Shown here in pieces: positions 16,065 to 49,494 of a stretch of 64,000 nt of DNA (position 1 is its first letter; each line of letters begins with the position of its first letter). The DNA lies in assembly GCF_006345805.1 (NCBI RefSeq), contig NC_043016.1:15004001-15068000 (forward strand), given 5' to 3'. Source of the stretch: Octopus sinensis. Taxonomy: Eukaryota. Under the pieces are notes generated by a model. It saw only the letters and a list, made by a program, of their open reading frames with translations. It was not told where the DNA came from and searched no databases. Position numbers and translations under genes: made by a program.

Positions 16065-16210
16065 GGTGGCACGTAAAAAGCACCATCCGATCGTGGCCGT
16101 TTGCCAGCCTCCCCTGGCCCCCGTGCAGGTGGCACGTAAAAAGCACCATCCGATCGTGGCCGTTTGCCAGCCTCCCCTGGCACCTGTGCAGGTGGCACGT
16201 AAAAGCACCC
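16065..16210 (+). repeat. 63-bp tandem repeat, about 2.3 copies, inside an RTE 3' UTR
   Basis: ggtggcacgtaaaa(a)gcacc recurs at 16065, 16128 and 16191 with nearly identical intervening sequence. Confidence 0.85.
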
Positions 16211-18236
16211 ACTACACTCACGGAGTGGTTGGCGTTAGGAAGGGCATCCAGCTGTAGAAACACTGCCAGATCAGACTGGGCCTGGCACAGCCTCCTGGCT
16301 TCCCAGACCCCAGTTGAACCGTCCAACCCATGCTAGCATGGAAAACAGGTGTTAAACGATGATGATGATGAAACATTATTTTTTTAACTTGTCTCTTATA
16401 TATATATATATATATTTAATGACAGGTTTCCTTCAGTTTCCATCTGCCAAATCCACTCACAAGGCCTTTGTCAGCCTGGTGTTACAGTAGCCCAAAATGC
16501 CATGCAGTGGACCTGAACCAGATCCATGTGGTTGAGAAGCTAACTTCTTCCCACACAGCTACACCTGTGCCTATATTCATGAACTTAGTTATTGGTGCTT
16601 CTGTTTAATTTTAATTTTAATTATAGATACTTTTTACTGTATATAAGTACTTTAGAGAGTTACTGAAATTTTCAGAAGCTTGTTTTCTTCAACTTTGTGA
16701 GGTTGAAAAGCTGCTTTTTTTAATAATGGGACAGTAGAGTGAATTCTTAAAAATGGCTAAGCTTGGCATCTTTTATATTTTACTTGTTGCAACCATTAGA
16801 TTGTGGCCATGCTGGGGCACTGTCTTGAAGGGTTTTAATCAAATAAATCGACCCCAGGACTTATTTATTTTTAAAGCTTGGTGCTTATTGTATCTTTTGC
16901 CAAACCATTAAGTTACAAGGATGTAAACATACCAACACCAGTTGTCAAGTGGTGGGTGGGAACAGACACAAAAATACACATATACTATGGGATTCTTTCA
17001 GTTTCCATCTACCAAATCTATTTGTGAAGCTTTGGTCAGCCCAGGGCTATAGTAGAAGACACTTGCCCAAGGTGCCATGCAGTGGGACTGAACCCAGAAC
17101 CATGTCGCCAGGAAGCAAACTTCTTACCACCCAGTCATGCCAGCACCTATAGGATATATTTGGATAAATAGTAGAGACACCAAGATTAGTTTACTTTGAA
17201 AGGGCTGGGAGAGATTTGAAGAATTTTTTGCTTTTGGTAGCAAAGTGAAGATTGGCCAAGGTAATTTCCTTGTGTATGTGTGTGTGTGAATGCAGGAAAT
17301 TTATTTGCACAACACTGACAAGTCCTTTTAAGGGACTGGGAAGCTTGATTGCTTTTTGGGAGGTCCGGAAACTTGCAGGTTCTGTAATGCACAAATCAAC
17401 TTTTGCTTTCCTGATGATCTCGCAGCAGTAGGCAAATGCCACTCTATTGGTGATGGCAAATGGCTTCTTCAGGTGTTCTTTGCTTCCTCTGCTGCAATAC
17501 AACTTTGAAGGAACTACTTGGAGATTAAGAGATTGTGTAAAAGTTGCGAAGAGTACAAGGATCTTATAAAATGTAGTTATCTTGGACAGATCAGAGAATA
17601 TTTGTATTTTCTGCCCAGGCAGCAATTTTAGGGTAGGAATAATTCGATTACATCAACCCTGGTACTTAATTTATCAACTGAAAGGATGAAGTGCAAAGTT
17701 GACCTTGATGGTATTTGAACTCAGAACACAGTGATAGACAAAATACTGCTGAGCATTTCACCCGGCGTCCTTACGATTCAGCCAGCTCACTGCCTTAATA
17801 AATAATAATAATAATAAGTGGTCTGTCATCATCATCATCATTTAACGTCCGCTTTCCATGCTAGCATGGGTTGAATGGTTCAACTGGGGTCTGGGAAGCC
17901 AGAAGGCTGCACCAGGCCCAGTTTGATCTGCCAATGTTTCTACGGCTGGATGCCCTTCCTAACGCCAACCACTCCATGAGTGCAGTGGGTGCTTTTTACG
18001 TGCCAGACGAGTCTGGCAAACGGCCACGATTGGATGGTGCTTTTTATGTGCCACCAGCACAGGGGCCAGGTGAGACTGGCAACGGCCACGAACAGATGGT
18101 GCTTTTTACGTGCCACTGGCACGAGGCCAGTCGGGGCGGCACTGGCAACGGCCGCCCCGACTGGCCTCGTGCCGGTGGCATGTAAAAAGCACCATCCGTT
18201 CGTGGCCGTTGCCACTGCCGCCCCGACTGGCCTCTG

Positions 18237-24382: not shown

Positions 24383-24437
24383 ATGGCTGCAAAACTTCTG
24401 TCCGTCGTATATACTACTAACCGAACAATTTCCAATG
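24383..24437 (+). CDS. PEPM: PEP mutase exon 1 (start of putative mitochondrial presequence)
   Basis: ccATGGct start context, MAAKLLSVVYTTNRTISN, then a G|GTaaat phase-1 donor in a repeat-poor region with unusually many CpGs. Joins in frame to the 39154 exon. The assignment rests on phase and protein continuity rather than homology. Confidence 0.65.
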
Positions 24438-27400
24438 GTAAATATTTCCGTTTGTAAGAATTAATTGCTAAGATCTTTTTTCTTTTTTTTTGTTGTTTTA
24501 TTTATTCGCGCACCTTCGTGAACAGCACGAAGCTGTCTGTAATGATACGTTTCATAGCCCACAACATATTCATGACGTTGCTAATTGCTAACAATTATAT
24601 TTTTTAAAAATACATACCCACAAAAGGGGATAATAGTTATATAGATATTTCTGTTTTTAACTCAAAACGTAAATTACTATGGTTTCGGTATTGTTTTTGT
24701 GCAATTAGGGTGTATGAAAATGTTATACGCGAATTATCCTTTGTTTCTGAATTAGGTAAAATAGGAAAAGAAGAGAGAGAGAGAGAAAGAAAAAAAAAAG
24801 ACATCTACTTAAAAAACATGAATGTGCGAGAAAACAACAATTAATAAATATCTGTCTTTTGTTCGGTTTGTTTCCGGACTTCTATGGAGTTAGAATATCC
24901 GATAATTCCTTGATAACGTAATAATACTCGTACCGTAGGGTGGATGGGAGGAATTCGAGATTAATTATGGTTTAGAGCTATAAATAATTACAGCTCTTTG
25001 TATGACTATAGCTAAAATTACAGAGCCGTTGACGCTTGATATGCTACAAATAACAGCTCTCAAACCACACTTTTCTCTTTAAAAAAAAAAAACCCAAAAA
25101 ACTAGAAGTTGTCCAATTAGATTTATATTATAAAGACGCGATGGTCGCAGCTAGAAAGCTTAAGTTTGGCGGCCAAACAACACGAATTTAATTATAAATA
25201 ATTGTCAGAACTGTCTAAATGAAAAAATGACACATCGACTGTCGCTAAGTTGAAGATTTAGTGGTACTTTACTCAGCAGTGGAATTATAATTCCTTATAA
25301 GAATAGAGAGTTTAAGACGATTTGAGAGTTATGAGCACGTGGCATATCGATCCAACTCCAGTCCAAACTTTTTAAATTATAATTCCATTCGCACCATTGA
25401 AGACGCTTTCTTAGCAATATTAAATCAATCCCCTATACCAATCCAGAGAGTGTTCCAACCACGACTGTCCAATGGTAATCTACAAATAACATCAGAATAT
25501 AATGCTCCACTTTCACTATGCCAAACTATAGTTAGTTTCATTTCGTTTAGCAACCGGCAAAGTTCATTTTTTTAAAAAATCTATTTTATTTTTTTTTTAT
25601 CATAGACTTGAAGCATTATTATTTTTTTTTGCGTTACTCATTTTCGTTGTAGAATTATTTTACTAGTCTAACTATGTATCTATTATACACGCACACACAC
25701 ATATACGCGTGTGTGTGTGCGTGTAGTGTGTATATGTAAATACACTACACGTATATCAAGAAAACGTCCCCACCCCCAACGATTTCGTTTCAGAAAAATG
25801 GATGGTTTTTAATGAAATTTCTATAAATGGATACGGTACTAGTAGCGTAGTCGTGGCACATTTGGCAAGTGTCTTCTGCTATAGCCCCGGGCCGACCAAA
25901 GCCTTGTGAGTGGATTTGGTAGACGGAAACTGAAAGAAGCCTGTCGTATATATATATATATGTGTGTGTGTGTATGTTTGTGTGTCTGTGTTTGTCCCCC
26001 TAGCATTGCTTGACAACCAATGCTGGTGTGTTTACGTCACCGTCACTTAGCGGTTCGGCAAAAGAGACCGATAGAATAAGTACTGGGCTTACAAAGAATA
26101 AGTCCCGGGGTCGATTTGCTCGACTAAAGGCGGTGCTCCAGCATGGCCGCAGTTAAATGACTGAAACAAGTAAAAGAGTAGGTGGATATCGGGCTCGACT
26201 CAATACTTTGGGTGGAGGGACACCACTGACTTTTGCTGGTCTTGAATAAATTCCATCGGTCATATGTTGAGTTCTGATTGTCAGGAAACATTTAATTCAC
26301 TTAGGCGCGGTCCCAGGAATCTTTCGAAGAGAGGGCACGAGGTCAAAAGGGAATACAATTCCAGGATAAAAGGGTGTAATAACATTATTTAGAAGGGTGC
26401 ACTTCTTTTCTTGGGTGGGGTACGTGCCCCTCAGGCCTCCACTCCCTCCTTGGATCCGCCCCTGCCACTACAGTACCTTTCCACGGATTCCAGTGTTGGA
26501 TAATATAATTAGCAGAATGCTATGGGTGGCTTTGTCTAAATCAGAGGTTCTTCAACCGGGCTCCATATGGCTTTTGGGGGATCTGTATAAGATTTTTGGG
26601 AGTCTTCGCTGGCAAAAAGTAAATTGGGGATCCACAATAGGGTCTGTAAAATGTTTTGATGTAAATGTGTCTATTGCAAGAAACACGTTTCGGTAACTAT
26701 TTCGTAAAGGACCCGTTCGCAAGTTTTTGTTTTCTTTTCCAGGTTCTTTCGCATTCTTTCGATGAACCTCAATCTTCCTCATCTTGATATTTTCACAGAG
26801 AAATATCGGTGGGTCCTTTATCGCAAAAAGCTGTTACGCGGTAGCAAAACGTGCTAGAAATACCAGCCAAATTCTTTCCTTTTCTGTAGAAAGGAGCTGT
26901 ATACGAGTGATTTCGATGTCACATTCGTTGAAAGCATGTGAAATAACCTGGAAAAGAAAAAGAAACCCGCGAAACAAAACTCCCACCACCCTCCCCTTTC
27001 TTTTCCGGGAAAAAGTGGTTTGTGGCAGGTTTGGTGGTCAGATACGTTGAATGCACTCAAAAAAAGTGTAGAAAAAAATTATTTCAAACCGAGGTACGAA
27101 ATATTTATGGAAGTGTGTACAAAATTAGTTTTTAAACATCGAATGGCTGTGGGAGTCCACCAGAATAATATAGTGAACGAAGGGGTCCGCAGATAAAAAA
27201 AAAAATGGTTGTGTCACTGGTCTAAAGCTTGTCGAAGTAAATGACATCTATGTTGTAGCTCCCTAGCTAAGTATACGGAATGCCATCTAAGTGGTGCAGG
27301 GACTGTGATTGACAGTCTCTGTCACCGACGATTTTTCTCGAGGCACCCAGTGGTTAGGACAGCGGACTCGCGGTTTCGATTCCCAGACCGGGCGTTGTGA

Positions 27401-28363
27401 GTGTTTATTGAGTGAAAACATCTAAAGCTCCACGAGGCTCCAGCAGGGGGTATTCGCGAACCCAGCTGTACTCTTTCACCTCAACTTTCACTTTTTCTTC
27501 CTGTTTCTATTGTATCTGTATTTCAGAGGGCCAGACTTGTCACATTCTGTGTCACGCTGAATCTCCCCCAAGAACTACCTTAAGGGTACATGTGTCTGTG
27601 GAGTGCTCAGCCACTTGCACGTTAATTTCACGTCTTCGTAAACGACGGGGTGCCACAATATAATGCTATAATGTCTGTGCGATGGACTCTGCTGTCGACT
27701 GCGATGTGTATGCATCCATTGGCTGTTCGACCAGACAAGACACACTATTCATTGAATTAGTGTGCGAAGAGTCTGAGTATTTCATAGACATAAGTACCCT
27801 TAACGTAATTCTTGGGTAGAATCAACGTGACACGGTGAGGCAAGGCTGTACCTTATATGCACACCCAACACTTATCACCAGTTTGACAAAGTGAAAGTGA
27901 AGCGTTAGCCCAAATTGTCTTCTCTTTTTTTTGAGTAAGTAGGTTGTTGTTTAAAGGGAATATGGTTGCTTCTAGCAACGGTTCGTTGTTGTGTAGCCTC
28001 GGCTGAGTTATATGTCATCCAAATCGGTCAACCGAACGATAAATCACCACATACATAACTGTCTTCCTTGTTAAATAAGGTCACCGTTTAAAACAAAGAC
28101 CATACTACACTACACTGTGACATGCAGGGAAGAGTCTATGGAGTGCAGTGTGTTAATCTGTGAAAGTTGCTCTCACTCCATTATCCAGTTTATTTCGGTG
28201 CACCCGTAATTTATGGTGATGACTACACAGTGGTATATCATTTGCTTTGCCCGTCCTGTGCATTAACCAGTTACCCACTCCCTTAAACATACCTTAAAAT
28301 ACAACAAATCGCGTTCTATTCACCCCGCTAATATCACGTCCTGTTATTGTGTTCGCAGTTGAA

Positions 28364-28905
28364 CTAGGGGGCGGAATTCTCTTTTAAGCACCCCATATGA
28401 CTTCTCATAACTTGGGGGGGGGGGGGATTTTCAGTAAAATTTTGCGAATTTGTCTTCTAAACACGGGAATTCATACAATTGTGAAAAAAAAATTGTATGT
28501 ATGATTTAAGAGCGAGATAGCTAGTGTTTTTGCACATCCCACGACTACCTGATACCTTCCTAGTTTCTTTGCCACTCTGACATGGATTAATGTTTTTCAA
28601 TATATATTCCTTTTCTCCCTATAAATATATTTAATGGAATACTGATGCACTTCAAAGTGGTTCAATGTTGGGATTTAAGCCAAGTATTCGATCTGCCGTA
28701 CTTTAAACTTCGGGAAAAAAAATCGAAAAAGTGGAAATTTTAGGATTCGTGGTTGGAGGGACGCTTTAAAAAAATTTCGTTTTTAATAATCGTCTGAATT
28801 CCCGTGTGAAGAATACAATTTCGCAAAAAATTCCTGAAAATTCCTCAAAATAGAAAAAAGGTTATGAGGGATTATATTGGGTACCTAAACCAGAATTCCG
28901 CCTAA
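28364..28905. mobile_element. MITE/fold-back element with long imperfect inverted arms
   Basis: ggcggaattct / agaattccgcc termini. 28425-28472 is an imperfect reverse complement of 28795-28843. Confidence 0.45.
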
Positions 28906-29819
28906 GTGGGAAAAGTTGACTCAATCAGAGCGCAACAGTTGTCATTTCCCAGCCCTTACTATTCAGTGGTGTGCATCCTAGTAGAGTGTTTGAGACCAGT
29001 GACTCTATTAAAATTGCTGCTATTTCCAAGATATAAACCACCCTGCTTTTATGCTTTGTTCTGGCTAAGAAAGGGATAAATGATTTTTTTTTTTTTAAAG
29101 GTGTTTGTAAGTGTGTGTGAACGGGTTGTTGGACGTGGTTTTTAATGCTGTGACAGAGACTGCAGGCATTACAATTCGGGAAACATCAAACTCATCTTTT
29201 TGCATATCCAAGTGGCTTTACATTCTTGTGTTAATGTTTCGGTGCGTGCGTGTGTATAAATTCTTATGGTGCATAGCGTGCGATTTTTTTATTCTTCGAA
29301 GTTTATTGTGGTTTTGTTACGGAGAGGTAGCGGGGGTACAGGGTAGGATTGATAGATCATGATGAATTTAATGTCTTGTTTGTACACCTTTGTATTTTTT
29401 ACATATTTCGCTCTTATGTTTGCACATTTTTTTTTTTTATGGAGGTTGTGAGGAATTTGTATGTAACTTTTAGTACCTTGTCTTTGGTGTTCTATGTTAT
29501 TTCTTCTGGGAGTTGGTAGAAATCATGTCTTTTGACTTCACATTGATAAATAAAGTACTACTCTATGGAGAACTTTTGGAATAGTTGTCCTCAAAACCCT
29601 TATATCAAGAGGATAAAAAGGAGTAGTGTTTGGGGTTTTTTTAAATGTTTTTTAAAAGTATTTCTCTGTTTCATGCAACACAATTCTGAACAATTCAGAA
29701 CAATTTTCTTCCAAAAATTTCAGTTTTCCCTCTCCCACTTTTACCTTCCCCTTGAGTGTAGGACTTCCAAGGAAGTTGTTCCAAAAATCTGCCCGCTCCT
29801 CCTCCTCCTCAGCACCACC

Positions 29820-29851
<32 letters not shown>

Positions 29852-31559
29852 TGGCAACCTGGAAGAATCGTTAGCATACCTGGCAAAATGCTTCGCAGTA
29901 TTTCGCCTGTCTTGGTTCAAATTCCATTAAGGTTGAATTTTTGAATTTGCCTTTCGTCCTTTCAGGCTTGATATAACATAAGTACCAGTCAAGAACTGAA
30001 CTCAATGAAATCAACTAGCTCCCTCTTTATAGTAGAAGCAGTTATTATTATTATTATTAAAGTGGTAACCAGACAAAATTGTTAGCATGTTGGTCAAAAT
30101 GCTGAGTGGTATTTCTTGGGCGGCGAGCTGGCAGAAACGTTAGCGCGCCGGGCGAAATGCTTAGCAGTATTTCGTCTGCCGCTACGTTCTGAATTCAAAT
30201 TCCGCCAAGGTAGACTTTGCCTTTTATCCTTTCGGGGTCGATTAAATAAGTACCAGCTACGCACTGGCGGTCGATGTAATCGACTTAATCCGTTTGTCTG
30301 TCCTTTCTGTGTTTAGCCCCTTGTGAGTAGTTAAAGAAATAGGTATTTCTTGGGCCTTTTTGTCTTCTGAGTGCAAATGCCACTAAGGTCAAATTTACCT
30401 TTTGATATTCGTAAAATAAGCACTGGTCAAGCACTGAGGTTGATATAATCCACTTGTGACCTCCTCTAAAATTGCTGGCTTTGTGCCGAAAATTATAAAG
30501 AATTATTAAAAAGAAGGAGATGAAGGAATTATTAGTGAGAAGGAGATTGTGAATTTGGTTAATGCAGCAATTTCTGGAGAAATGCAGGAAGATGTGTGTG
30601 TGTGTGTCTAATGTCATCATTGTATGAGACTGTGTATGTTTTGTGTGGAACATGAAAAAGTCATTAAGTTATAGGTTGAAATAATCTTTTCTACTCTAGG
30701 CCTGAAATTTTGGGGGAGGGGCCAGTCAATTAGATTGACCTCAGTGCACAACTGGTACTTAACTTATCAACGTCGAAAGGATGAAAGGCAAAATCGACCT
30801 TGGCAGAGTTTGAACTCAGAACACAAAGACAGATGAAATACCTATTTCGTTACTACCCACAAGGAGCTAAACACAGAGGGCACAAACAAGGACAGACAAA
30901 TGGTCGATTCCATCGACCCCGGTGCATAACTGGTACATAATTTATCAACCCTGAAAGAATGAAAGGCAAAGTCAACCTCGGTGGAATTTGAACTCAGAAC
31001 GTAATGGCAGACGAAATATGGCTACGCATTTCGCCCGGCGTGCTAACGTTTCTGCCAGCTGGCCGCCTTTATTGGCTGAAAAAATGAGTGCAAAATGAGA
31101 GGATGATCCTTGTGGTTCTCCATTGAAGAAATTAGAGGATCTGCAAGTATTGTTCTTGTGCATGGCATCAGCTTGGCTGTCTGACATCTTGTTTACTAAC
31201 CAGACTACCCCCTTAACCCTTTAGCATTTAATCCCACCGTATCTGGCCAAAATATTCTACTTGTTTTATGTTTAAACTGACCACACCTACCTTACAATAT
31301 CATTCTAAAAATATACAATCGCAGCATTGAAATCTTGAAGCTACAAGACAATGCGTGATTAAATCAAGACAATGTAAGTAAATGAACCTTATATTTTACA
31401 AAGAATTCTGAATTCTAAGACATTAGACATTAAGGGAGTGTTCAGTACATTTGCTGTTCTTTTTCTTTCTTTTTTTTTTTTAATGAATGGTGAGCAGAGA
31501 ATGGAGTTGAAGGCTTTGTTAATATTAATAGGAATTAAAACATTGTGTCGTTTTTTTTT

Positions 31560-32700
31560 TGTTTGTTTTTTCCATTATTATAACAACCATGTATTTTTTG
31601 TGTTAAATTTGTTTGTAATGGGTGGCTGAATGTAGCAGTCTGAATCCATATTGTGATTTGGTGAACAGAAAATGTGCGGAAGTGATGTAAAAAGATTAGT
31701 TTTCTTAGAACTTCTGAAAATATGCATAGGAGGGTGATGGGTTTGTGTGATGATACTTGGGCATTTGTTGGACTTTAGAATTGCAACAGTTTTATCCAGC
31801 TTCCAGATTATGGGAATTTAACAATTTTCTAAGCAAAGTGGTGAATTCAGTGACTCCTTCAGGCTGTAGGTATTTAAAGTGTATGGGTGTGATTCAGTCT
31901 GGCCCTGAGGTCTTTGAGATTTTAGGTTTCTCTGTGTCCTTTTCTGTTTCTGTTGAAAGAAGGGAATTTTCCTTTCCCATGAAATATGGGACTTGATGGC
32001 CAGCTATTGTAAAATTTCACTGAGATTTTTACATCTGTTAGCCTGTCCAATTTTTAGTGGTTTATTCTTGTACCACTCCTAACACTTTAGTAGACAAGAA
32101 AGATTGCAGCTCAGTAACGAACAACAGCTTTAATACATCAGACGATCTTGGCCTAATTGTTTGCCAATAGTATTTTAGCTACAATCATTCAATTGTATGG
32201 CTCTGAATGGAAATTTCCATGAGTTTCTCACCAAAACATGGCTGTAAATTGAGATGAATGCCACACATTAGACAGAAGCAGCAGAAGTCCATAAGAAAAC
32301 AAGTTTCTTGGTCACTGCTCAACCCCAGGTTAAAAAGAAATCATTTGTCTACCATGAACACAGAATTTTCTTGCTTCTCACAACATGAAGACACAGATAT
32401 TTTTCCTAGCAAGTATGTAGTCATATCTCTAGTAATAAAGGTTTATCTAGATGCTTCTGGCATACAGCTTACCCTTGGCAGAAGCCTCTGTTTATATTTC
32501 TGTAAATAAATGGTTTCCTTGAAAACATCAAATGAACTTGGTTTTGATATGGTAACAGCACACCCAGAATCAGCCCTACCAATTATTCAACATCCATTTG
32601 ATCAAGTTCCTAAAAGTATCTCTTAAGATCCTTTTTAATGTTACAGCAATTAGCGTTGTTATTAGCATTATTAAGGTAATAATCAAGTATTTATGAAAGG
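31560..32700 (-). mobile_element. Possible highly decayed Penelope-like reverse transcriptase relic
   Basis: Minus-strand LAIKSHISWERKIPFF loosely resembles the PLE RT segment (H)PSIKFTxExE...LPFLD. Many stops; weak evidence. Confidence 0.3.
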
Positions 32701-35700
32701 AATCCAGCAAGTGTGATGCAAAAAATATTGTTGATAGAAAGAGGGAGATAATTCTAAATGAAGTTCTGAAAATTTAACATTCTACTACTATTCCTTGAAT
32801 TTGGTGCCTGACTATTCTTTATTCCATACAAGAATAGTTTTGCTTATAGTATCTCACTAATAGTTTCATTCAACACTTAGCATTATGTGATCTACTATAA
32901 TAGTTTCTAAATAAATTCCATAGATTTTTTGGTTGTTATTTCAGGTAGCTTTGATCTTTATCCAGCAGTGCTATGGAAGAAGCACATCACTTAACTGGCT
33001 TTTAACATTTTTTTTTTTTGAAAATTTCATTGAAATTATATACTTCTAACATGAAAGACTATGACAATTGAAAAAAAATTTTTAATTTATTTTATCCTCA
33101 CTTCTTACAACAATTATAACAACTCTGCCACAAATTTTTTCGAAGCTTTCAAATAGAAAATAAAAGAAAAAAGAAAGAGGAGAAAGAAAATGAAAGTCAC
33201 ACAATGAATTGTATATTTTTCATTTTGAAATATTTCTATTTCAAATTCTTGACTCTAGGATATTTGACAAAATTAATTATTTTGTTCATAACGACATTGG
33301 AATTATGGCATTAACAATCATTTGGAATAAACATTATTATCCAATCTTATCATCTGCATTCAATTTCTTGGATATCAACAAAAAAAATTTTACAAATAAG
33401 CCATTGCATTTGAAAAAAGAAAATTTATAAACGAATCATTATGAATTTTACTAAAATATCTGACATATTTCTATTTTATTTTCCATCTTTCATGTTATTG
33501 TCTTAATTTGATAACAAATTAATTTGATTTAAAAGAAAATGTTTCAGAGCTTTTACTGTCTGAAACAGACTTACTTTCTTTTTCAAAATAAAACAAACGG
33601 TAAATGTTGTCTATTTTGAAATAAAAATTCAGCAGTTCACTATACTTTGTGTTGTTGTGAGAAAATATACATAACGTTTTCATTTTTGGCTTTTTCTGAA
33701 ATTTCTTTTTTTTTTTTTTCACTGTCTCAAAAATGCAAAAGAAGTTAAAAATGAAAAGGTTACAAGGAGGGGGATTTTAAAACTTCAACATCTTTTTTTT
33801 TATGTAGAATGTTGACTTTCGAAAACATAGAAATCTAGAATTCTTGAAAAAAGTTAATAAACAAGTTATAGCCAGATCAGTGATGCGTTTATTCCAAAAC
33901 TCTGCTCATTCTTCATTTTTATTTTGCATTTGAATTTTTCTTTCTAAAGCTGAAGCTTCTTTCTATGTTTGATAAGTAAAACCAAACTAGCACACTAAAT
34001 TCAACTCCTACTTTTTCAATCTACCTTTTGTTGTTCATGTTTCCACCGAGCTGCGTATGTGACTGTGGACTACTATAAGACATGGAGGTTACAAATATTA
34101 AATATAAAAAAAGTCAACAGGGTCCCCATTGACAAATATTGTTCATTTGAAAAAGATGATAGTTTGCTAATCTAGACTCTGACTTTCCTTTTCTACTGGG
34201 GCCATTACAATTGAATTTTATACTCATTGCTAGAAAATGGTTTCAGGCCTGCCACTCCATTGGTTACAGTGATGAGGGTTCCAGTTGATCTGACCAATGG
34301 AACAGCCTGCTCATGAAATTAACATGCAAGTGGCTGAGAACTCCACAGACACACAACATACCCTTAACATAGATCTCAAGAAGATTCAGCATGACACAGA
34401 ATGTGAAAAAGCTGGCCCTTTGAAAAACAGGTGCTACACATTTTTGCCAGCTGAGTGGACTGGAGCAACATGAAATAAAGTGTCTTGCTTAAGGACACAA
34501 CATGCTGATGGGAATCAAACTCACAGCCTTATAATCTTGAGGCAAAGGCCCTTAACCATTTATCCATGTGCACTCACTGGTTTCAGATTTAGGCCTATAA
34601 AAATGATTTCTAACATAGACACAGTTACAATCAATATAATCACCTACACTATTGGACCGGTGCTTATTTACATCAACACCAGAATGAAGAAAGACAAAGA
34701 CAACAACTGAGAAATGTAACTAAATACTTACTACAAAATAAACCCCCCCCCCCGACTCTGCCAATTTTGCCTTGCATCAATCATAATAATCCTTTCTACT
34801 ATAGGCACAAGCCCTGGAATTTGGTGGGTGGGGTGGGGGAATCAATTACATTGACCCCAGTGTGTAACTGACATTTAATCAACCCCGAATGGATGAAAGA
34901 CAAAGACAACCTTGGCGGAATTTGAACTCAAAACATAAAGATGGACAGAATGCTGCTAAGCATTTTGCCTGGTGTGCTAATGATTCTGCCAGCTTGCCTC
35001 CTTGCATCAATTGTAATAATAATAATAAAACTAAATCAGGACAAAATGTGGCATAGGGAGCTTTGATGTGGCAGCTTGACCTCCTAGAATTAGCAGACTA
35101 ATATTCCTCATATCATATCTCTGACTATCTTAAGAGAAAGAAGGATACATTAGACAATGTGGGTCCAGATATTCATTAACCCTTCAGCATTCAGATTAGT
35201 CTGTCAAATGTAATGTTTATTGATTCACATTGTTTTGAATTAATCCTGCCTTATTTCATAGCTTCCAGATTCCAGTTGTATGATTATTTATAGAATGGTA
35301 TTGTAGGGCAGTTCCAAGATAAAAAGGGTAGAATATTTGGGCTGGATATTATCAGTTTAAGCTGACAATATCCAGTTTAATGGATTATGTTCCAGGCTTA
35401 ATATATTTGTTGTATCAGAGTTAAATAACAACAATGCTTAGCCAAAATACTGTCAGTGGGGAAACTGAGAGGGAAATCAAAGCTGGTCTCCAATCTTAAC
35501 TAGAAGATTGCTTGCAATGAGTGATAAAAACTGCAAAAATTTTCAAACATTTGTTGAAATGATTCTTATTAAAATGTATTTGAAAATGCAAAAAGAAAAA
35601 ATTAATTGCACATTGCAAATTGCAAATTGCATTTGGCAATGAGATTACTTGGTGACCTCACTTCTGTAGTGCCATGTAAAAAGCAACCAGTACACTCTGT

Positions 35701-35734
35701 AAAATGGTTGGGATTAGGAAAGGCATTAGGCCTT

Positions 35735-36040
35735 AGAGACCATGTCAAAGCAAGCAGTAGGGCTTGGTGTACTCCTCTGGCTTGCCAGCTCCTGCCAAAC
35801 TGTCCAAGCCATGCTAGCATGGACAGTGGACTTTGGATAATGATGATGATGGTAGTGGTGGTGGTGGTAATGGCAGCAGCAACAGCAGTGGTATTGGTGG
35901 CACTGCTGCTTCCACTCCACCATCCTTATCATCATCCTCCAAAGTCCATTGTCCATGCTAGAATGGCTTGGACAGTTTGGCAGGAGCTGGCAAGCCAGAG
36001 GAGTGTGCCAAGCTCTACAGCCTGCTTTGGCATAGTTTCA
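35735..36040. repeat. About 115-bp inverted repeat pair (tail-to-tail RTE 3' UTR remnants)
   Basis: actcctctggcttgccagctcctgccaaactgtccaagccat (from 35771) is exactly reverse-complemented at about 35963-36004. Confidence 0.85.
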
Positions 36041-39000
36041 TGCGGTGGCATGCAAGCTAACATTCTATGTGCAGTGAACTAAAGCATGAAGAAAAATATT
36101 AAGGAATTAAACTAACAGTTTCCTTTGAATGTAACGATTTACTGAATCGTAATCAAAGAGATAATAAAAATAGCAGCAGAAGGACAGCCATTGAAAGACA
36201 AAGAAGCCACCAGACAGAATGTCTTACAGCATTTAATTATATACTTTTATGTGGAGGTGCAATGGCCCAGTGGTTAGGGAAGCGAACTCACGGTCATTGG
36301 ATTGCAGTTTCGATTAAAAGCAGACTCCAATGGTTTGCTCCAAATGCTGACATGTAAAACATGGTGAACAATTATAAGAAATTGTCACCAATAAACTTAT
36401 TAATGTATGATTTTCTGATTCTGCTCATCACTCACTATATTAACCTCTAACTTCTCCTCCACCTCTTTACCCCCCCCTTATAAAAGTATTCACTCTCTCA
36501 TCCCCCTCCCCTGACCCACTGTCTGTAGCCTCCCTTATACCCACCTTCTTATACCATGACAGTTTGCCCTGGTACTCCACACTACATTCCTGTTATCTCC
36601 TTCACCCATCTATCTTCTCTACAGCAAGACACTTGTACTTGTCCTTCTGTCTTACTTGAACATTTAAACACCTGACATAAAACCATCCATCCCCATCTTC
36701 CTCTCCCAAACACTTCCTCTTTGTAGTAGGAGCTATTTTTCTCTTTTTTTCTCTGTTCTTTTCTGTCTTGCAAATTACATGACAACCTCACTAGTGCTGG
36801 TGCCACATAAAAAGCACCCCGATACTACTTTGTAAAGTGGTTGGCATTAGGAAGGGCATCCAGCCATAATAACCAAGATAAGGATGATAATGGAGCCTGA
36901 TGCAGCCCTACAGCTCACCAGTTCCCTTTCAAATTGTCCAACAGCATGGAAAGTGAACATTAAATAATAATGATGGTGGTAGTGGTGGTGGCGGTGCTGC
37001 TGCTACACATTTTTGAACAGTTCATATTCTTATACTAAAACATTGTTAAATACAGTTAAAGATCATGGCAAAAAATTTGAAGGTTGTTCTTGTTAGTGTT
37101 ATCAGATTTGGTTTGGTTGTACACTGCCAAATAGCTTCAGGGAGATTCAGCATGGCATAGAATGTGACACGGTTGGTCCTTTGAATTATGAATACAACTC
37201 AATTTTGGTAACTGAGTGGACTTGGAGCAATGTGAAGTAATAAAGTGCCTTGCTCAAGGACACAATGCTGCTGTAGATCTGATCTATATTTTTTATTTTA
37301 TATATAAGGCGGCGAGCTGGCAGAAACGTTAGCATGCCAGGCGAAATGCGTAGCCGTATTTCGTCTGCCGTTACGTTCTGGGTTCAAATTCCGCCGTGGT
37401 CGACTTTGCCTTTCATCCTTTCGGGGTTGATAAATTAAGTACCAGCTATGCACTGGGGTTGATGTAATCGATTAATCCGTTTGTCTGTCCTCGTTTGTCC
37501 CCTCTGTGTTTAGCTCCTTGTGGGTAGTAAAGAAATATATATTTTTTATTTTGATAGGACTCCTATCAATTTAGATCAGACGAAAACGTTTATCAAAGAT
37601 AACCTTTAGTCTGTGATAGTAATCCTTAAAATAAGTAGATTCAAGCCCATTGTTAGAGTCTTTGTAGATGAATGATTGTTTTGGGATCAGTTCAAATGTC
37701 CGTGTGTCAGAGCTGTTTGGCATCACGTTTGATCTGATATGGTTGTCTTCTCTAAGTGATGTCTCTTAAATCTCTGTTATGTGAATCATCTTGAATCATT
37801 TTGCTTGATAAGTGAGGCTCTGCTTTTTTTCTTGATGTCATCTCTTTCGTGATGGCTGGCACCTCAGAAATCGAGATGCTGCCCACTAAAATGAAGAGTA
37901 GATGTTTACTTACGTACAGTATTAGGCTTGAACTCATCTATGGATACAAACAGGGATGAAATGTTGATTAAACTACTGAAACTCAGAAACAAGTTAAAAA
38001 CGAAATGTTTTTAAAAGGTTGGGTGAAGGCTTTTGTGGTTTGTCTTTTATCTGATTAAAAAAAAAAACAAAAAAAAAACAATCAAAGAATTTTTTCCCAT
38101 TTCTTTCATCTTTATTTGTTCCAGTCACTGAACTGCAGCCATGCAACAGGTCTGCCTTGAAGGGTTTTAGTCAAAAGAAAGGGATTCCAGAACTTGTTCT
38201 TAAGTCTGGCACTTATTTTGTTGTTTTCTTTTGCTGAACCACTAAGTTATGGGGACATAAACAAACCAACACTGATGTCAAGTAGTGATGAGGAACAAAC
38301 ACAAACAAACAAACAAAAACACAGAGACACACATGACAGGCTTCTTCCAGTTTCCATCTATCAAATCCACTCACACAGCTTGAGCCAGGCCAAAGCTTTA
38401 GTAGAAAACTCTTGCCCATCTTTGAAAAGTACCATGATATCTTTTCTGCTAATAAAGCAATGAGTAAATGTGGTTATTCTTTCAGAGTAACAATTTCCAA
38501 AAGTTGATGACATTGACTAAACTTGTAGCTATGTTGTAAGTTGATTACTGTAGTCTTGTTTAGGATGGCACCAACAATTAATAGAATATCTCTTTTGATA
38601 TTCTATAGAAAAATAGTTGGAGGTTAAGTAAAACAGTGTTAAGAGATTAGCCTTTTAGCATTCAGCTTTGTCTATCAAACATGAAGATTATTTGCCAGTG
38701 CCCCCTGACTGGCTCCTGTACCGGTGGCACATAAAAAACACTACCCAAATGTGAATGATGCCAAGCCCACCTGACCGGTTCCTAAAGTACTGGGGTCAAT
38801 GTAATTGACTATACCCACCCCACAAATTTCAGGCCTTGTCCCTATAATAGAAAAGATTATTTGTAGAACTTTCACTTGTCACCACTTCTCCATTTAACAC
38901 AGAAAATGTGTATGTGTAATATGATTATATACAGAGAGATATGATGTGAGATGATATTATTATTTAGCTTCATCAGAGCGATACCAATAACTTGTTATTA

Positions 39001-39153
39001 GTGCATTGCATCTTATGGCAGAAACAGCTGTAAGCTAATTAAAATTATGACATAATTTCTTATTCCCTTGTCATTTAATTTCTTTTATATATATCTGAAC
39101 TTTTTGAGGTCATCAAATATTTTATCTTATTTTTTGTTATTGTATTTTACTAG

Positions 39154-39221
39154 GATTTAAAGGAGCCTTTTTAAATGGATCTCGATGGATGCATTCAAGT
39201 CAGGAACCAAACAAAGTCAAG
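39154..39221 (+). CDS. PEPM: PEP mutase exon 2
   Basis: Polypyrimidine tract with ttttactAG acceptor and AAG|GTgagc donor; 68 nt, phase 1 to 0. Reads (G)FKGAFLNGSRWMHSSQEPNKVK. Splicing to the next exon gives [12 protein letters not shown], the N-terminal sequence I recall for mussel PEP mutase. Confidence 0.85.
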
Positions 39222-39925
39222 GTGAGCTATCAAAAGAAAAGAACATAAATTGTAATGACCGTCTAGCTATACCATCCCACTTTCTCTCTCTCTCTCTCTC
39301 TCTCTGTGTCTCGTGTGTGTATGCCAGAGAAGCAGTTATATGTATCTTTAAAGTTCTTGAACCAATTCCTGCAATTCTTCATGTGAATAAGTTGGTGAGT
39401 CATTGTTGTTGGCATGATTGGACAAGAAACAGTAACATTCAGCACACACACATTTATTTATTTCTACTACTACTACTACTACTACTACCACCTTCACCAT
39501 CACCATTAGTACTGTGACATGTGTGCTGTTGGTCAGGCTTTGTGATGAAACACTGGACAGATTGTAGTGTCCACTATTGAAACTAGAATTGTTAAGTGGT
39601 ATTCTGTGGAGCCTGTCTGTAATGTATATAGACAGGCAAGCAGGTTGGTCAGGATTTAGATCCTTGAATAACAAATGTTCATTAGGATCACCTCACACTG
39701 AAAGGGTCCAGTGATAATCTCACCATCTGTGTAGTCTGCAGTTGCATTGCAATTTCAAAAGCTCACCTTGTCATCCATAAAAGGTCGCATGTCAGAGGAC
39801 CAACACAAAATGCTTGAACAAAGATGGCACACGGGTTGACTGTTTGCTTTGTCCTCACCACACCCTCGCCACATTTGTTGACTGTAAGATTACATTGAGT
39901 GAACATCTCTCGCTTTTTCTACAAG

Positions 39926-40135
39926 ATGATGTACTCAATAGCAGAAAGATTGAAGATTGTGGAAACATTATTGAGAATTCATTCTGTTTAGCAAGTGTGT
40001 AAAATTTTTGAAGTCAAGTTTGTAGGTAAAGGCTTACCAGCAAAGAGAACGATAAAAGTGTTGGTCAAGAAGTGGCTTGTTACAGGGCCAGTACACAGCA
40101 CCCCAAAACAAAGAGACCCGACACTTCAAATGCCA
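39926..40135 (+). mobile_element. Tc1/mariner-superfamily transposase N-terminal relic
   Basis: MMYSIAERLKIVETLLRIHSV*QVCKIFEVKFVGKGLPAKRTIKVLVKKWLVTGPV resembles the HTH xYSxxERxxIVE...PxxxTIxxLVxKFxxTGSV pattern. Confidence 0.5.
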
Positions 40136-40685
40136 CAAGTTATTCAAGATATCAGCCAAAGGATTACTCAACGTTCAAAGACGTCAACATGTTAATTGGC
40201 ACAGCAGTCTCACATAAGCAAGAGGTCATGCCAATGGGTATAAAGTTGTAGCCATATCATTTCATATGTGTGCAACAATTAAAAGTGAATGACAAGAGCA
40301 AACTACACTGGGTTTTTGAATAGCACGTACAAGGAAATGAAATAACAAAATGACACTTGCAAACAAAGGGTTAGGTGCTTTCTCATGTGTAAATGTATTT
40401 CTATATTCATACTATACTATGGAACCGAGGCTATTTGGCTATTTTTGAGTGTGCCACCCTGAATATATATATATATATAAACGTATGTATATTTTTTCAA
40501 TGTTTACAAATAATACAGAAATAAATAAATAAATAGTTACCAAGGTAGCAAAAATTCACACAAGTACCAAGAATGTAACAGCCTACTTATAAAGGTAGAA
40601 ACTCCAGGTTCAGGTGAAATGTTTTTGTATAGTATACATAAATAAATAAATGGAGTTAAATGCAAGTGTTATTCAAATCTTTTTA

Positions 40686-40773
40686 TTTCCGACATATGTT
40701 TCGAAGAAAACATTGGTATTATTCCAGAAGGAATAAAATGGTGTAAAACAATGCAGTCTTCTCATCAAGGAAA
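40686..40773 (-). ncRNA. Second hammerhead ribozyme motif (C3U variant), antisense copy
   Basis: The reverse complement reads UUUCC-UUGAUGA-GAAGA...UCUUC-GAAA-CAUAUG-UC-GGAAA, with a palindromic stem III ACAUAUGU and a GUC triplet. Confidence 0.55.
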
Positions 40774-41019
40774 AAGAAACCAAAAACATCAATAAGTCTT
40801 TAACATTCTGAATGTTAAAATGTCTTACTGATGTGTTTGATTTCTTTTTTTCTCTGATGAGAAGACTGCATTGTTTTACACCATTTTGAATACAGTTCTA
40901 TATTTAAGAGATGAGGAATTATGTACATTATTTACATATATTGACAAATATCCGTCAAAAGTAAATAATGTACCATTTTGAATGTTAAAATGTCTTACTG
41001 ATGTGTTTAGTTTCTTTTT

Positions 41020-41106
41020 TTTCTCTGATGAGAAGATTGCATTATTTTACACCATTTTAATGGTGTAAAATAATACCAATGTTTTCTTCGAAACATGTGT
41101 CGGAAG
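41020..41106 (+). ncRNA. Type I hammerhead ribozyme motif, sense to the PEP mutase pre-mRNA (intron 2)
   Basis: Stem I UUUCU/GGAAG; CUGAUGA 41025-41031; stem II GAAGA/UCUUC extended by the 14-bp AUUAUUUUACACCA/UGGUGUAAAAUAAU helix; GAAA 41090-41093; short stem III A-CAUGUG-U; GUC triplet 41099-41101. Confidence 0.7.
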
Positions 41107-42416
41107 TAAAAAGACTTGAATAACACCTGCGTTTAATTCCATTTATATATGTATATATATATATAATATTATATATATATAGTTATAGTTAAGGGTAAAG
41201 ACCCTCTTTGCTCATAAATGACCATGGGATTGCACCTAGAAGTTTCCCTCCAAAACACAAGTCTGAACAAGGTTGTTTGTGAAAGACCAGTAGTTGGCCA
41301 TGCATACCAGACCAGCCTCCCCTCTCCACACCACCAATGTTATACAAGGGAAAGGCAAAGGCAGATACAGCTTGGCACCAGTGACGGTTCAAGTCGTTTC
41401 TACAGCTGAGTGTGTGTGTGTGTGTGTGTGAAGACATGTAGCTTAGTGGTTAGGCTATTTGGTTCACAATCATAGGGTCATGAGTTCGATTCCCAGCAGC
41501 ATGTTGTGTCCTTGAGCAAGGCACTTTATTTCATGCTACTCCAGTTCACTCAACTGATAAAAATGAGTTGTACCTGTATTTCAAAGGGCCAGCCTTGTCA
41601 CATTCTGTGTCACGATGAATCTCCCTGAAAAGTATATGAAGGGGTACACTTGTCTGTGGAATGCTCAGCCACTTGCACGTTAATCTCATGAACAAGCTGT
41701 TCTGGGACCTTCATCGTCATCATAAGTGACGGAGTGCCAGTTATATATATATTTATATAAAGATGAGAATGTACATCTGTCTGTGTGAAGCACTAAAACT
41801 TGAGAACTACACAACCAATTTCATTCAAACTTTACACATATCTTACTTAGGGTCCATGTAGTGTCATGGGCCATTGCCTAATGCGAGCCCAGAGCAATCT
41901 CTTATCTCTTCCACTATTTCAGTATTACGTGTCAAAAGTGAAACAATAAAATCTCTCTGTTCTAATGTCAGATACTTTCACTTTAATACCGAAACTATTA
42001 AAGTGAAACTATTATCTCACATACATATACATTCATACATACATGTATGCATGCATGCATCCATCCATCCATCCATCCATACATACATACAAGTGTGTGT
42101 GTCTGTCTGTCTATGAATCTCTAATGAGTGGATTTCCTAGACAGAAACTGAAAGAAATCAATCATGTGTGTATATATGTAAGTGTATGTGTGTGTCTTTG
42201 TGTAAGTGTTTCTCCCTCATCACTGCTTGACAGTTGCTGTTCGTTTATTTACATCCCTATAACTTATTGGTTTCACAAAAATAGACTGATAGAATAAGTA
42301 CCAGGCTTATCAAAATAAAAAAAAAGCAGTGGTTGATTCATTCAACAAAGAATTCTTCAAGGCAGTGATTCATATTTTTATTTGCTCACTCAATTGTATC
42401 TATCAATCTATCTTTC

Positions 42417-42455
<39 letters not shown>

Positions 42456-42627
42456 GTATATTTATAGGTGCAGGAGTGGCTGTGTGGTAAGTAGCTTGCT
42501 TACCAACTACATGGTTCCGGGTTCAGTCCCCAGCATGGCATCTTGGACAAGTGTCTTCTGCTATAGCCTCGGGCCGACCAATGCCTTGTGAGTGGATTTG
42601 GTAGACGGAAACTGAAAGAAGCCTGTC

Positions 42628-42675
<48 letters not shown>

Positions 42676-42906
42676 GTATATGTGTGTGTGTTTGTGTGTC
42701 TGTGTTTGTCCCCCTAGCATTGCTTGACAACCAATGCTGGTGTGTTTACGTCCCTGTCACTTAGCGGTTCGGCAAAAGAGACTGATAGAATAAGTTCTGG
42801 GCTTACAAAGAATAAGTTCCGGGGTTGATTTGCTCGACTAAAGGCGGTGCTCCAGCATGGCCGCAGTCAAATGACTGAAACAAGTAAAAGAGAGTATATA
42901 TATATA

Positions 42907-42943
<37 letters not shown>

Positions 42944-42971
42944 GACATGTATGTATATGTGTATATATATA

Positions 42972-44672
42972 TCTATTATATAAAAGCCAATGTCTTTATG
43001 TGTGTTCGTGTGTTACTTATAGATTCGAAAACTGCTGCACCGATCCTAATGAAGAAGGGTAATGTTGTATGTTTCATACAATTTCATGGACTAAAATTAC
43101 TGAATGAATCCTTATGATATTTGGAACTTAGATTCAATGCATAAAGGTGGATATAATACAATATGTTTGGTTTGAATTTTAGGTGGCTTAAAGGGGGCAG
43201 AACCCCCTATGAAAATTCATAAATTTTCAATGTTGATGAAATTTCAACCATAGGTAATTGACACACATCGAGATGTATTCCCAAAGTTTCTGCTTCTCAT
43301 GAGGATTCTAAGACCCCTTAATTGGAGGCCTTAACCACCAAATTTTAGTAATTTTTTATGATCCAAAACTAGGTCAAAAGTACTGAATGGATCTTTATGA
43401 AATTTGGAAATTATATTCCATGCATAAGGACAGATGTAATGCAGTATATGTCTAAAAGTGAGGGGGCATAAATTAGGCAATAACCCCCATGGAAATTCAT
43501 TTTTGCTGTTAATGAAATTTTAACCATAGATATTAGACACAAATGAAGTAATATTTCTAAAATTTCAACTTATTAGGGGCTTAACCCCTACAATTTAGTC
43601 ATTTTTCCTAAGATAAGTGCAATTGGAAGCTGTAGGTTACCTGAGTATACAAATGGAGTGTTATTTGTAATTCAATGGTACAACACTGTAAGAGTTTGCT
43701 TTGAGATATACATAGATTGTGATTTCTGCAATGTGGTGCATAAATTGTCAAGTAAAGGAGAGGCATCTTTGCCTCCACTGATTCAGTTGCAAAGTGTTAT
43801 TTTGAGTAAAGTTATTTGGCTGCATACCTCCTTTCAGTCTTTTTCTTATGAATGGGTCACACATAGTCCCCATATGGTAACATTGATTTCAAGGCTTTTC
43901 CAGATAAGTGACTGGTCATTGAAAGAGATTTATAGATTGCAACTTTATTCTGTCTGGTTACCTATCAGCATAGTGATCATTGGCAAACTCTAGAGGTGAC
44001 ACTTTCATTTCTCCTTTGCCCTTACGTCACACAGTTGTTAATGTTTATTTCAGTTGGGTCACGCCCTTCCAATTGCTATAGATCCATAATGCATCTTACG
44101 GCTGTGCCTATCACCTTCATAGTGAGGAATCCTACATTGGGGAGTGGTAACAACTAGGATACGGTAGCTGACTGCTTATTGTGATCATTTGTCTTTTGGT
44201 TTCCTGTAGCTTTGCTCTCTTTTACAAACCCAGTGAACATTCATATATTTCCAATTTCAAAGAAATTTGAACAATAGATATGATATAAGACCCAAGTTAA
44301 AAAAGATTCCCAACAATTCAACTTCTCTGGTTAACATTAAGACGCCCCACTCCCTCCACACACACAATAGGGGCCTTAATTCCCACATTTTAGAGCTCTA
44401 TGTGCTCCATTTTTCAGGAGCAAAAACCTTTAAATAGGTTTCATAAGATTTCGATTTTGGATCTGGGCATAAAGATGAGTAGTATGGGATAAATATGTCA
44501 TCATTAGAATTTTTGTTAGGGAGTGTAAAGAAACAACCCTCGCTAAAATTCTTAATCTGCAATTTTGATGACATTTGAATCCTAGCTATTCCAGTTCATT
44601 ACAGAAAATATAAAAGAAAAGTTTAATTCTTCAACTCCATGTGACATGGGCAAAGCTAGGTATCTCTGCTAG
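42972..44672 (+). mobile_element. Non-autonomous Helitron-like element
   Basis: 5' TCTATTATATAAAAG start and 3' gggcaaagctaggtatctctgCTAG end, inserted between A (42971) and T (44673) in TA-rich flanks. Degenerate internal repeats at about 43200 and 43485. Confidence 0.5.
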
Positions 44673-44707
<35 letters not shown>

Positions 44708-44720
44708 TTAGAGACAATAT

Positions 44721-44785
<65 letters not shown>

Positions 44786-44786
<1 letters not shown>

Positions 44787-45657
44787 ACATTGTCTGATTA
44801 ATAAGTATCCAGACTGTTGCCATAGTAATGAAGCTAAAGCACGCAGAGTGAAGCTGGTTGGCACAGATGGACCTTGGACTCTGCTATGTTTTAATGTTCT
44901 AGCTCACTTTTGCTGTTAAAAGCAGTGCTTGGAAGGGAGGTGTGTAGTGTGTGATCATTGCATTGACTATGACAGAAAAATTTGAGCAGAGAATCTGTAT
45001 CAAATTTTGCCAAAAGCCTGATGATACCTGCTCAGAGGCTTACATAAAGTTTTCAAAAAGTTTCCATCATTCTTGACATAATCAAGATCTTGTGCAACTG
45101 GAACTTGAGTGTCTTTTTGGTCAGCTGAAAGCAGTTTTGGCACAAACTTGGCAGACACACATCTCATGCCCAAATCTTCAGTGATAGTGGACTGGACTGA
45201 ACTGAACCATAACTAATTTGCACATCCTCCAATAACTCACGGATGGTAATTCGATGATTTCCCCTCACAGCTGCATGCACATCTGTGATGTTTTTCTCAT
45301 TTCTGCTGGTTGCGGGTCTCCCAGAATTTTTGTCAATATTTGACATTTTTCAGTCATCTAAGAAACATATGAACCACTTATACACTTGTGTGTGGCTCAT
45401 CCACTTTCTACAACTTTGCATAGGCCTCTGAGCAGGTATTGCCATGACCACTTTCTCTGCCATGGTCAATGTGATGATCACACACTACACACCTTCCTTC
45501 CCAGCACTGCCGTAAACAGCGGAAGTGAGCTAGAATGTTAAAACTTATTGTGCATGCACAGCAGAGTTCAAGGTTAATTTGTGTCTAGCGGCTTCACTCT
45601 GTGTGCTTTAGCTTCGTTACTATGGCAACAAACTAAATACTTATTGATCAAACCTCA
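44786..45657. mobile_element. Mariner-derived fold-back element built from two 5' ends
   Basis: Inverted termini taataagtat...tgttgccatagtaa(t/c)gaagctaaagcac. The + arm encodes MTEKFEQRICIKFCQK; the - arm encodes SGRPATSRNEKNITDV...RITIRELLEDVQISYGSVQ...SAKFVPKLLS. Confidence 0.75.
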
Positions 45658-49413: not shown

Positions 49414-49494
49414 CGCCATTCCACCAGAGTATCACAATAATAATAATATTAATAATAATAATAATAATGATAATAATAATAACAATAATAATAC

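Follow-up and report, generated by a model that had tools for sequence, protein, structure and literature searches.

The analysed window, 64,000 nucleotides (nt) of the forward strand of Octopus sinensis contig NC_043016.1, covers the 5' half of the gene that encodes octopus phosphoenolpyruvate (PEP) mutase, an enzyme of phosphonate synthesis that forms the carbon-phosphorus bond. The first two coding exons of this gene are very small and lie about 14 to 15 kb from their neighbours. They probably encode a cleavable mitochondrial matrix presequence of ∼31 to 35 residues followed by a short linker, joined to a catalytic core of bacterial type. This reading is drawn from comparisons of sequence, gene structure and a predicted fold. 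A mitochondrial presequence on two remote mini-exons had been the original prediction for this stretch. Every expectation that can be read from the sequence agrees with it and holds across animals, and the localization itself stays at the level of a prediction.

A six-frame search found the peptide on which that prediction was built in two pieces of the + strand, MAAKLLSVVYTTNRTISNG (24383-24439) and FKGAFLNGSRWMHSSQEPNK (39156-39215). Both segments are real exons with GT-AG boundaries and splice in frame onto exon 3, and the first 41 residues of the product are those originally quoted. The window carries the following parts of the gene:

24383-24437, + strand: exon 1 (coding part), 55 nt; donor AATG/gtaaat; ends in phase 1.
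24438-39153, + strand: intron 1, 14,716 nt, with GT...AG boundaries.
39154-39221, + strand: exon 2, 68 nt; acceptor ttttactag/GA after a polypyrimidine tract, donor AAG/gtgagc; ends in phase 0.
39183-39197, + strand: putative site of the mitochondrial processing peptidase (MPP) of the R-2/R-3 type, R29-W30-M31-H32-S33, assigned by motif position and by conservation of the motif in orthologues.
39222-53035, + strand: intron 2, 13,814 nt, containing degraded repeats and retroelement-like open reading frames (ORFs).
53036-53132, + strand: exon 3, 97 nt; acceptor aaacag/AAAACA, donor ACTG/gtaacg; 32 residues plus (G), the start of the catalytic core.
60618-60830, + strand: exon 4, 213 nt, GT-AG and in frame; core residues 74-144, including W79, S81, D93, D120, and D122.
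62974-63074, + strand: exon 5, 101 nt, GT-AG and in frame; core residues 145-178, including E149, K155, and N157.

The initiation codon of exon 1 stands in the context caagcaACCATGG (ACCATGG), with a genomic in-frame stop 10 codons 5' of it. Exon 1 encodes MAAKLLSVVYTTNRTISN(G), starting at Met1 and stopping after one base of the Gly19 codon, and exon 2 continues with (G)FKGAFLNGSRWMHSSQEPNKVK, ending directly ahead of K-T-T-Q. Joined together, exons 1 to 5 form an open frame of 178 residues, and the gene runs past the 3' end of the window. The translation is identical at 178 of 178 residues to the O. sinensis RefSeq protein XP_029648658.1 (P0206). Since this model already contains both mini-exons, the exons themselves are no discovery.

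The top match of the protein search, which scored only the 178 residues encoded in the window and carried the C-terminal part of protein P0001 as an unscored tail, is the PEP mutase of Octopus vulgaris, with 99% identity at 100% coverage. The same 90% cluster contains XP_029648658.1 and the Octopus bimaculoides protein XP_014769947.1. Compared with O. sinensis, the 41-residue extension differs at one position in O. vulgaris (F24V) and at two in O. bimaculoides (G19A and M31L). The window is collinear with the O. vulgaris chromosome OX597829.1 at 92 to 99% nucleotide identity, introns included, with intron 1 at 92 to 98%. Gene models with nine exons are found in O. vulgaris, which has four further exons beyond exon 5, and in Argonauta, and this nine-exon layout of the octopus gene matches that of the Mytilus galloprovincialis orthologue.

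The membership of the encoded protein in the PEP mutase family is indicated by a profile match, by similarity to a characterized enzyme and by conserved residues, with catalysis as the predicted function. The profile of the isocitrate lyase/PEP mutase superfamily (PF13714) matches residues 52-178 of the partial protein with 101.8 bits against a cutoff of 31.5. Residues 38-178 align to residues 3-143 of the Mytilus edulis chain 1m1b with an E value of 3.4e-79, and the M. galloprovincialis orthologue (P0129) shows 87% identity across the aligned part. The residues that we take to bind Mg2+ and the substrate are, in mussel numbering, W44, S46, D58, D85, D87, E114, K120, N122, R159, and H190. The octopus equivalents encoded in the window (W79, S81, D93, D120, D122, E149, K155, and N157) are invariant in an alignment of 35 sequences, as are R194 and H225, which lie beyond the window in XP_029648658.1.

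Presequences for the mitochondrial matrix are typically 10 to 70 residues long, combine a basic with a hydrophobic face, abound in serine and threonine, lack acidic residues and are cleaved with arginine at position -2 or -3 (PMC12895284). The octopus extension comprises 41 residues ahead of KTTQ, ∼31 of them before the proposed cut, and thus falls within this range. Residues 1-35 contain four lysine or arginine residues, no aspartate or glutamate and 20% serine plus threonine; ahead of E36, no residues other than K4, R14, K21, and R29 are charged, in full agreement with the original counts. On a helical wheel of 100 degrees per residue, the four basic residues of this segment lie within 300 to 40 degrees with a resultant at 350 degrees, and the hydrophobic resultant points to 183 degrees. 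The helical moment of the 31-residue segment is 1.03, compared to 0.46 ± 0.23 in shuffled sequences (p = 0.0135). The composition is shared by 30 pooled extensions of orthologues, with 9.3% arginine, 6.6% lysine, 14.2% serine, 0.7% aspartate and 1.7% glutamate. The likeness to canonical MPP-cleaved presequences (PMC12895284) therefore extends to length, the two faces, the abundance of serine and threonine, the lack of acidic residues and the arginine at -2/-3 of the proposed cut. A difference lies in the residue behind this cut, which is histidine in octopods and serine in most orthologues, and import and cleavage of the octopus protein are predicted.

The arginine motif R29-W-M-H-S-S was found as described, with its codons at 39183-39200. 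An equivalent of R29-W-M-H-S occurs in 26 of 30 orthologous extensions, compared to 9.1 in shuffled sequences. Searched for 5 to 18 residues before KTTQ, the pattern R-x-x-[S/A] is present in 23 of the 30 (8.5 ± 2.4 in shuffles) and the stricter pattern R-x-hydrophobic-[S/A/H] in 18 (2.9 ± 1.6 in shuffles); for neither did any of 5,000 shuffles reach the observed number, a count that is no true probability because the 30 sequences are related. The motif lies within exon 2 in all four species with exact gene models. The identities of extension and core to those of O. sinensis are 42 and 93% in Argonauta, 29 and 80% in Mytilus, 22 and 81% in Nematostella, and 22 and 73% in Capsaspora. With the extension otherwise almost wholly diverged, the arginine motif stands out as constrained. 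Such fast divergence of the extension against a conserved core is typical of targeting peptides and is consistent with that function here.

When the O. sinensis protein was modelled with AlphaFold2 from the 35-sequence alignment, residues 1-35 received a predicted local distance difference test score (pLDDT) of <50, whereas residues 41-80 reach 94 to 98 at an overall mean of 82.8. The barrel opens with a helix at residues 42-51 (pLDDT of ∼95).

The crystallized PEP mutase of Mytilus edulis (1pym, 1m1b, and 1s2t-w) is among the closest known systems, an animal enzyme characterized both biochemically and structurally. The crystallized form (1m1b and 1pym) comprises 295 residues, which correspond to residues 35-329 of the gene model of the sister species M. 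galloprovincialis; the genomic model thus has 34 extra N-terminal residues. The 295-residue protein begins with MSTKVKK right behind ...VIKRA (...KRA/MSTKVKK in Mytilus), and its start is that of the product expected from a cut two residues past Arg33. Because the mussel protein starts at the predicted cut, the textbook enzyme equals the form predicted to result from processing, and the full precursor would be the product of the octopus gene. The mature octopus enzyme would correspondingly begin at M31 or H32, a putative N terminus. The extension is dispensable for the fold, as seen from the crystallized mussel form and the disorder in the AlphaFold2 model. Methionine occupies the hydrophobic position of the motif in many bivalves, in Ephemera and in Corticium. 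In the bivalves, this is probably the reason that the mussel cDNA was taken to encode a protein of 295 residues.

The N-terminal extension is widespread and, by this comparison, confined to eukaryotes. A comparison of ∼35 named orthologues from molluscs, cnidarians, sponges, insects, a rotifer and Capsaspora shows 25 to 60 residues ahead of K-T-T-Q in nearly all of them, Capsaspora included, and the extensions of other molluscan PEP mutases have the same presequence-like character. Among 165 full-length homologues, the length ahead of KTTQ is bimodal, with either 0 to 8 or about 25 to 45 residues. Exact splice models of four other species, built from deposited proteins and genomic loci, compare with the window as follows:

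This window: exons 1/2/3 of 55/68/97 nt; introns 1/2 of 14.7/13.8 kb.
O. vulgaris: exons 1/2/3 of 55/68/97 nt; introns 1/2 of 17.2/21.2 kb.
Argonauta hians (locus L006, introns at 1059-4536 and 4608-5877): exons 1/2/3 of 58/71/97 nt; introns 1/2 of 3.5/1.3 kb.
Mytilus galloprovincialis: exons 1/2/3 of 70/50/97 nt; introns 1/2 of 4.4/3.7 kb.
Nematostella vectensis: exons 1/2/3 of 52/50/97 nt; introns 1/2 of 1.2/1.1 kb.

In all five models, exon 1 ends in phase 1 and exon 2 ends in phase 0 immediately before K-T-T-Q. By this comparison, the layout with two mini-exons is ancestral to cnidarians and bilaterians. The two remote mini-exons of the original prediction are thus real and annotated, but their remoteness is no peculiarity of the gene; it reflects an expansion of octopus introns, because the same introns measure 3.5 and 1.3 kb in Argonauta. 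Introns 1 and 2 of Octopus are 4 to 11 times as long as those of Argonauta and longer still in O. vulgaris, where the whole gene spans ∼67 kb, compared to ∼11 kb in Argonauta.

RNA-seq assemblies of two relatives, probably other cephalopods, contain the spliced extension with in-frame stops upstream. The automatic gene calls P0001 and P0208 on Logan contigs (L009-L012) begin at an internal methionine, and in one of the two sets 16 N-terminal codons are missed; an earlier in-frame ATG, about 48 nt upstream, adds MMTFKHFANTFVRRQY and brings the extension to 42 residues, in line with the other cephalopods. Several deposited models have short, missing or odd N termini, namely those of Liolophura (P0013), Nematostella (P0048, 282 residues) and Pomacea (P0046). 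Because exons 1 and 2 are so small, these are likely mis-annotated first exons and not genuine losses of the extension.

Bacterial PEP mutases show the core without the signal. The proteins from Anaerolineales, Chloroflexota and Ignavibacteria (P0081, P0099, and P0113) are 77 to 81% identical to the window-encoded part of the octopus core and have the same length from KKTTQ to the C terminus. In contrast to the animal enzyme, they lack the N-terminal extension and introns and are encoded in phosphonate gene clusters. The bacterial proteins begin with M-x-KKTTQ, which places the start of the conserved enzyme at KKTTQ; of the start KVKKTTQ given originally, this part is conserved, and the preceding KV is shared with Mytilus only. 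The phase-0 intron ahead of exon 3 (53036) coincides exactly with the start of the bacterial reading frame, M-x-K/KTTQ. The core identity together with this intron position suggests one of two histories, extreme conservation or the ancient transfer of a bacterial gene to which 5' exons were added afterwards.

The following mechanism is proposed for the enzyme as a matrix protein. The unfolded precursor would present its basic amphipathic N terminus to the import machinery of TOM20/22 and TIM23, with exon 1 supplying the amphipathic part bound by the receptors and exon 2 supplying the processing site and the short linker. MPP would cut after R29-W30, and one further residue may be trimmed by an aminopeptidase of the Icp55 type. 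The mature enzyme of ∼300 residues would then assemble in the matrix and convert matrix PEP to phosphonopyruvate. The equilibrium of the PEP mutase reaction strongly favours PEP, and the forward direction is thermodynamically unfavourable. Therefore, the enzyme that draws the reaction onward, the decarboxylase, should share the compartment. Import, the position of the cleavage, the matrix source of PEP and the co-localization of the later steps are what we infer for this route.

Some of the same observations can be read differently. The presequence could be real but weak or regulated, giving a dual localization with a substantial cytosolic pool that arises through inefficient import or from an isoform without the signal, transcribed from an alternative promoter in intron 1 and started at Met31. 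In that case, carbon-phosphorus bonds would be formed outside mitochondria as well. This explanation is unlikely, though several points speak for it: Met31 lies in frame in exon 2 within the R-W-M-H-S motif, its equivalent is the bivalve, Ephemera and Corticium methionine mentioned above, the mussel enzyme, as cloned and expressed, has 295 residues and begins at this very methionine, and RefSeq lists isoforms for several of the orthologues. They are opposed by the single isoform of the octopus PEP mutase in its 90% cluster and by the residue itself, which is leucine in O. bimaculoides and leucine, phenylalanine, isoleucine or valine in cnidarians and many other animals. A conserved alternative start at Met31 was rejected on these grounds. 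The exchanges indicate that hydrophobicity is conserved at this position and an initiation codon is not, in agreement with the expectation for -1 of an R-3 site. A further explanation, which we consider improbable, treats the extension as nonmitochondrial, either as a disordered regulatory or linker tail or as a signal for the endoplasmic reticulum (ER) and secretory route or for peroxisomes. The AlphaFold2 model, with only disorder in residues 1-35, would fit this explanation, as would residues 5-10 (LLSVVY), which are moderately hydrophobic behind a basic residue. A regulatory tail, however, would be expected to keep its sequence, whereas the extension keeps its composition and the arginine motif. 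The best Kyte-Doolittle means over 8, 10 and 12 residues are 1.86, 1.55 and 1.18, and polar or basic residues, among them serine, threonine and tyrosine, interrupt the segment; by this heuristic, which is not SignalP, there is no uninterrupted hydrophobic core of about 7 to 15 residues, which speaks against an ER signal peptide. The extensions of Nematostella (MLRPTFTRSVVLGRNFVRSLSVRKNSS) and Capsaspora likewise have no hydrophobic core and keep their basic and hydroxylated character, and no conserved nonapeptide resembling the peroxisomal targeting signal PTS2 was seen across the inspected extensions. PEP is, moreover, not a metabolite of the ER lumen, which counts against an ER signal.

An annotation artefact, in which gene predictors would have strung together chance frames as exons 1 and 2 while the protein really started near KKTTQ as in bacteria, is hardly credible. 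The tiny size of the two exons and their distance from their neighbours would fit it, as would older models without the extension such as the 282-residue Nematostella protein. However, the number, sizes and phases of the exons are alike in four genera from cnidarians to cephalopods, and the spliced mRNA assemblies of the two relatives encode the extension behind upstream stops. Exon 3 is also unable to initiate translation alone, because AAA directly follows the AG acceptor and no ATG is nearby. Between Octopus and Argonauta, identity amounts to 59% in exon 1 and 56% in exon 2, a modest excess over the random level of 45 to 52% in the flanking intron sequence. The comparison of O. sinensis with O. 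vulgaris is uninformative on purifying selection, as the introns are themselves 92 to 99% identical.

The interpretation as a matrix presequence also has to face several observations of its own. Residues 1-35 show neither a helix nor any other secondary structure in the AlphaFold2 model and appear as low-confidence coil. The extension of Liolophura has only 15 residues, and those of Hydra and Brachionus are without the arginine motif; these cases may be annotation errors or true exceptions. The shuffle tests ignore the kinship among the 30 extensions, the scores for targeting and hydrophobicity are heuristics of our own and not trained predictors, and the RefSeq models are themselves predictions. 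The PEP mutase of Trypanosoma cruzi is reportedly dually localized, which also favours the rival reading of a dual localization; exclusive residence of the animal enzyme in the matrix should therefore not be assumed. All of these points weaken the case for a matrix enzyme, as does the outcome of the search for its partner enzyme.

This search used a phosphonopyruvate decarboxylase encoded at 6596-7744 of a locus from a metagenome-assembled genome of Gemmatimonadaceae (L091), which matches TIGR03297 with 373.6 bits. It served as the query against 50% representatives and, length-gated, against 90% clusters. An animal phosphonopyruvate decarboxylase was not recovered; both top lists are bacterial, and nothing recognizably animal is found among 25 N termini. 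Beside the PEP mutase, no decarboxylase gene is present on a rotifer-like eukaryotic contig or on four bacterial contigs. At 4956-7747 of the Gemmatimonadaceae locus, the PEP mutase carries a fused C-terminal domain of ∼250 residues that resembles a nucleotidyltransferase by eye, and the decarboxylase frame overlaps the end of this fusion by four bases. In two loci from Chloroflexota (L014 and L015), by contrast, the partner of PEP mutase is a 2-hydroxyacid dehydrogenase, and a decarboxylase is absent from the vicinity.

Among texts that combine either enzyme, PEP mutase or the decarboxylase, with mitochondrial or targeting terms, the only precedent found is a preprint on rhizarians, with nothing on animals. 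In the mitochondrion-related organelles of these protists, PEP mutase and the decarboxylase are placed, by prediction, after an organelle-targeted PEP carboxykinase (10.64898/2026.09.23.753574). The hydrogen-producing rhizarian mitochondria share the logic proposed here, in which organelle PEP from PEP carboxykinase passes to PEP mutase and then to the decarboxylase (10.64898/2026.09.23.753574). They differ in that rhizarians are anaerobic protists with reduced organelles and a predicted placement of the enzymes, whereas the putative signal described here was found in animals, which are aerobic, and its conservation extends across Metazoa. A coral genome paper describing the animal aminoethylphosphonate pathway does not discuss targeting or localization. 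The novelty originally suggested for this compartment in animals holds in so far as no paper was found that states it for them; for eukaryotes at large the idea is not new, as it has already been predicted in rhizarians. Already known are the annotated gene model, the textbook type of the signal and the predicted protist precedent. New are the proposal for the animals as a whole, the great age of the two-exon module and the view of the mussel enzyme as a processed form, all with a predicted localization.

We also hold it possible, with somewhat more doubt than confidence, that in all phosphonate-making animal lineages the carbon-phosphorus bond is formed and phosphonopyruvate is decarboxylated in mitochondria on PEP from mitochondrial PEP carboxykinase, the decarboxylation by thermodynamic necessity, that a reading frame of bacterial type gained the signal as two 5' mini-exons before the split of cnidarians and bilaterians, and that the 295-residue mussel enzyme is the matrix form. 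The import signal on mini-exons is perhaps older than Metazoa, as Capsaspora has a similar extension.

The long open frames upstream of the gene and within its introns were considered as other genes and rejected; they are repeats with Pfam matches below threshold only. Dispersed repeat frames (HGLDGSTGVWEARRL...FLQLDALPNANHS) occur on both strands in at least 5 copies, at 2-295, 924-1232, 15997-16333, 17865-18182 and 35605-36079, and probably represent a SINE-like or other short interspersed element. Further features lie in and around the introns:

39280-39310: (TC)n run after exon 2.
47157-50490, + strand: broken series of retroelement-like ORFs in intron 2, with subthreshold matches to PHD/C1 zinc fingers.
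52535-52970: trinucleotide tract reading as poly-Ser/poly-Val, just 5' of exon 3.
54990-55340: CA/TG-rich tract with His-Thr and Cys-Val frames.
58806-59081, - strand: fragment of a Mos1/mariner-type HTH_48 domain in intron 3, 18.9 bits, under the cutoff.

In molluscs and cnidarians, a large part of the phosphorus can be present as phosphonates, 2-aminoethylphosphonate for example, and to our knowledge there is hardly any description of the cell biology behind phosphonate synthesis in animals. If the mitochondrial placement is true, the pathway would draw on mitochondrial PEP, formed from oxaloacetate of the tricarboxylic acid cycle via PEP carboxykinase, and not on glycolytic PEP. A decarboxylase in the matrix would be required, and a phosphonate intermediate or aminoethylphosphonate would have to be exported to the ER and Golgi, the site of phosphonolipid and phosphonoglycan synthesis. 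The mussel enzyme that has been in use for so long would have to be seen as a processed form, and the gene would be a case of a bacterial-type enzyme with a presequence on separate 5' exons that has been retained for more than half a billion years.

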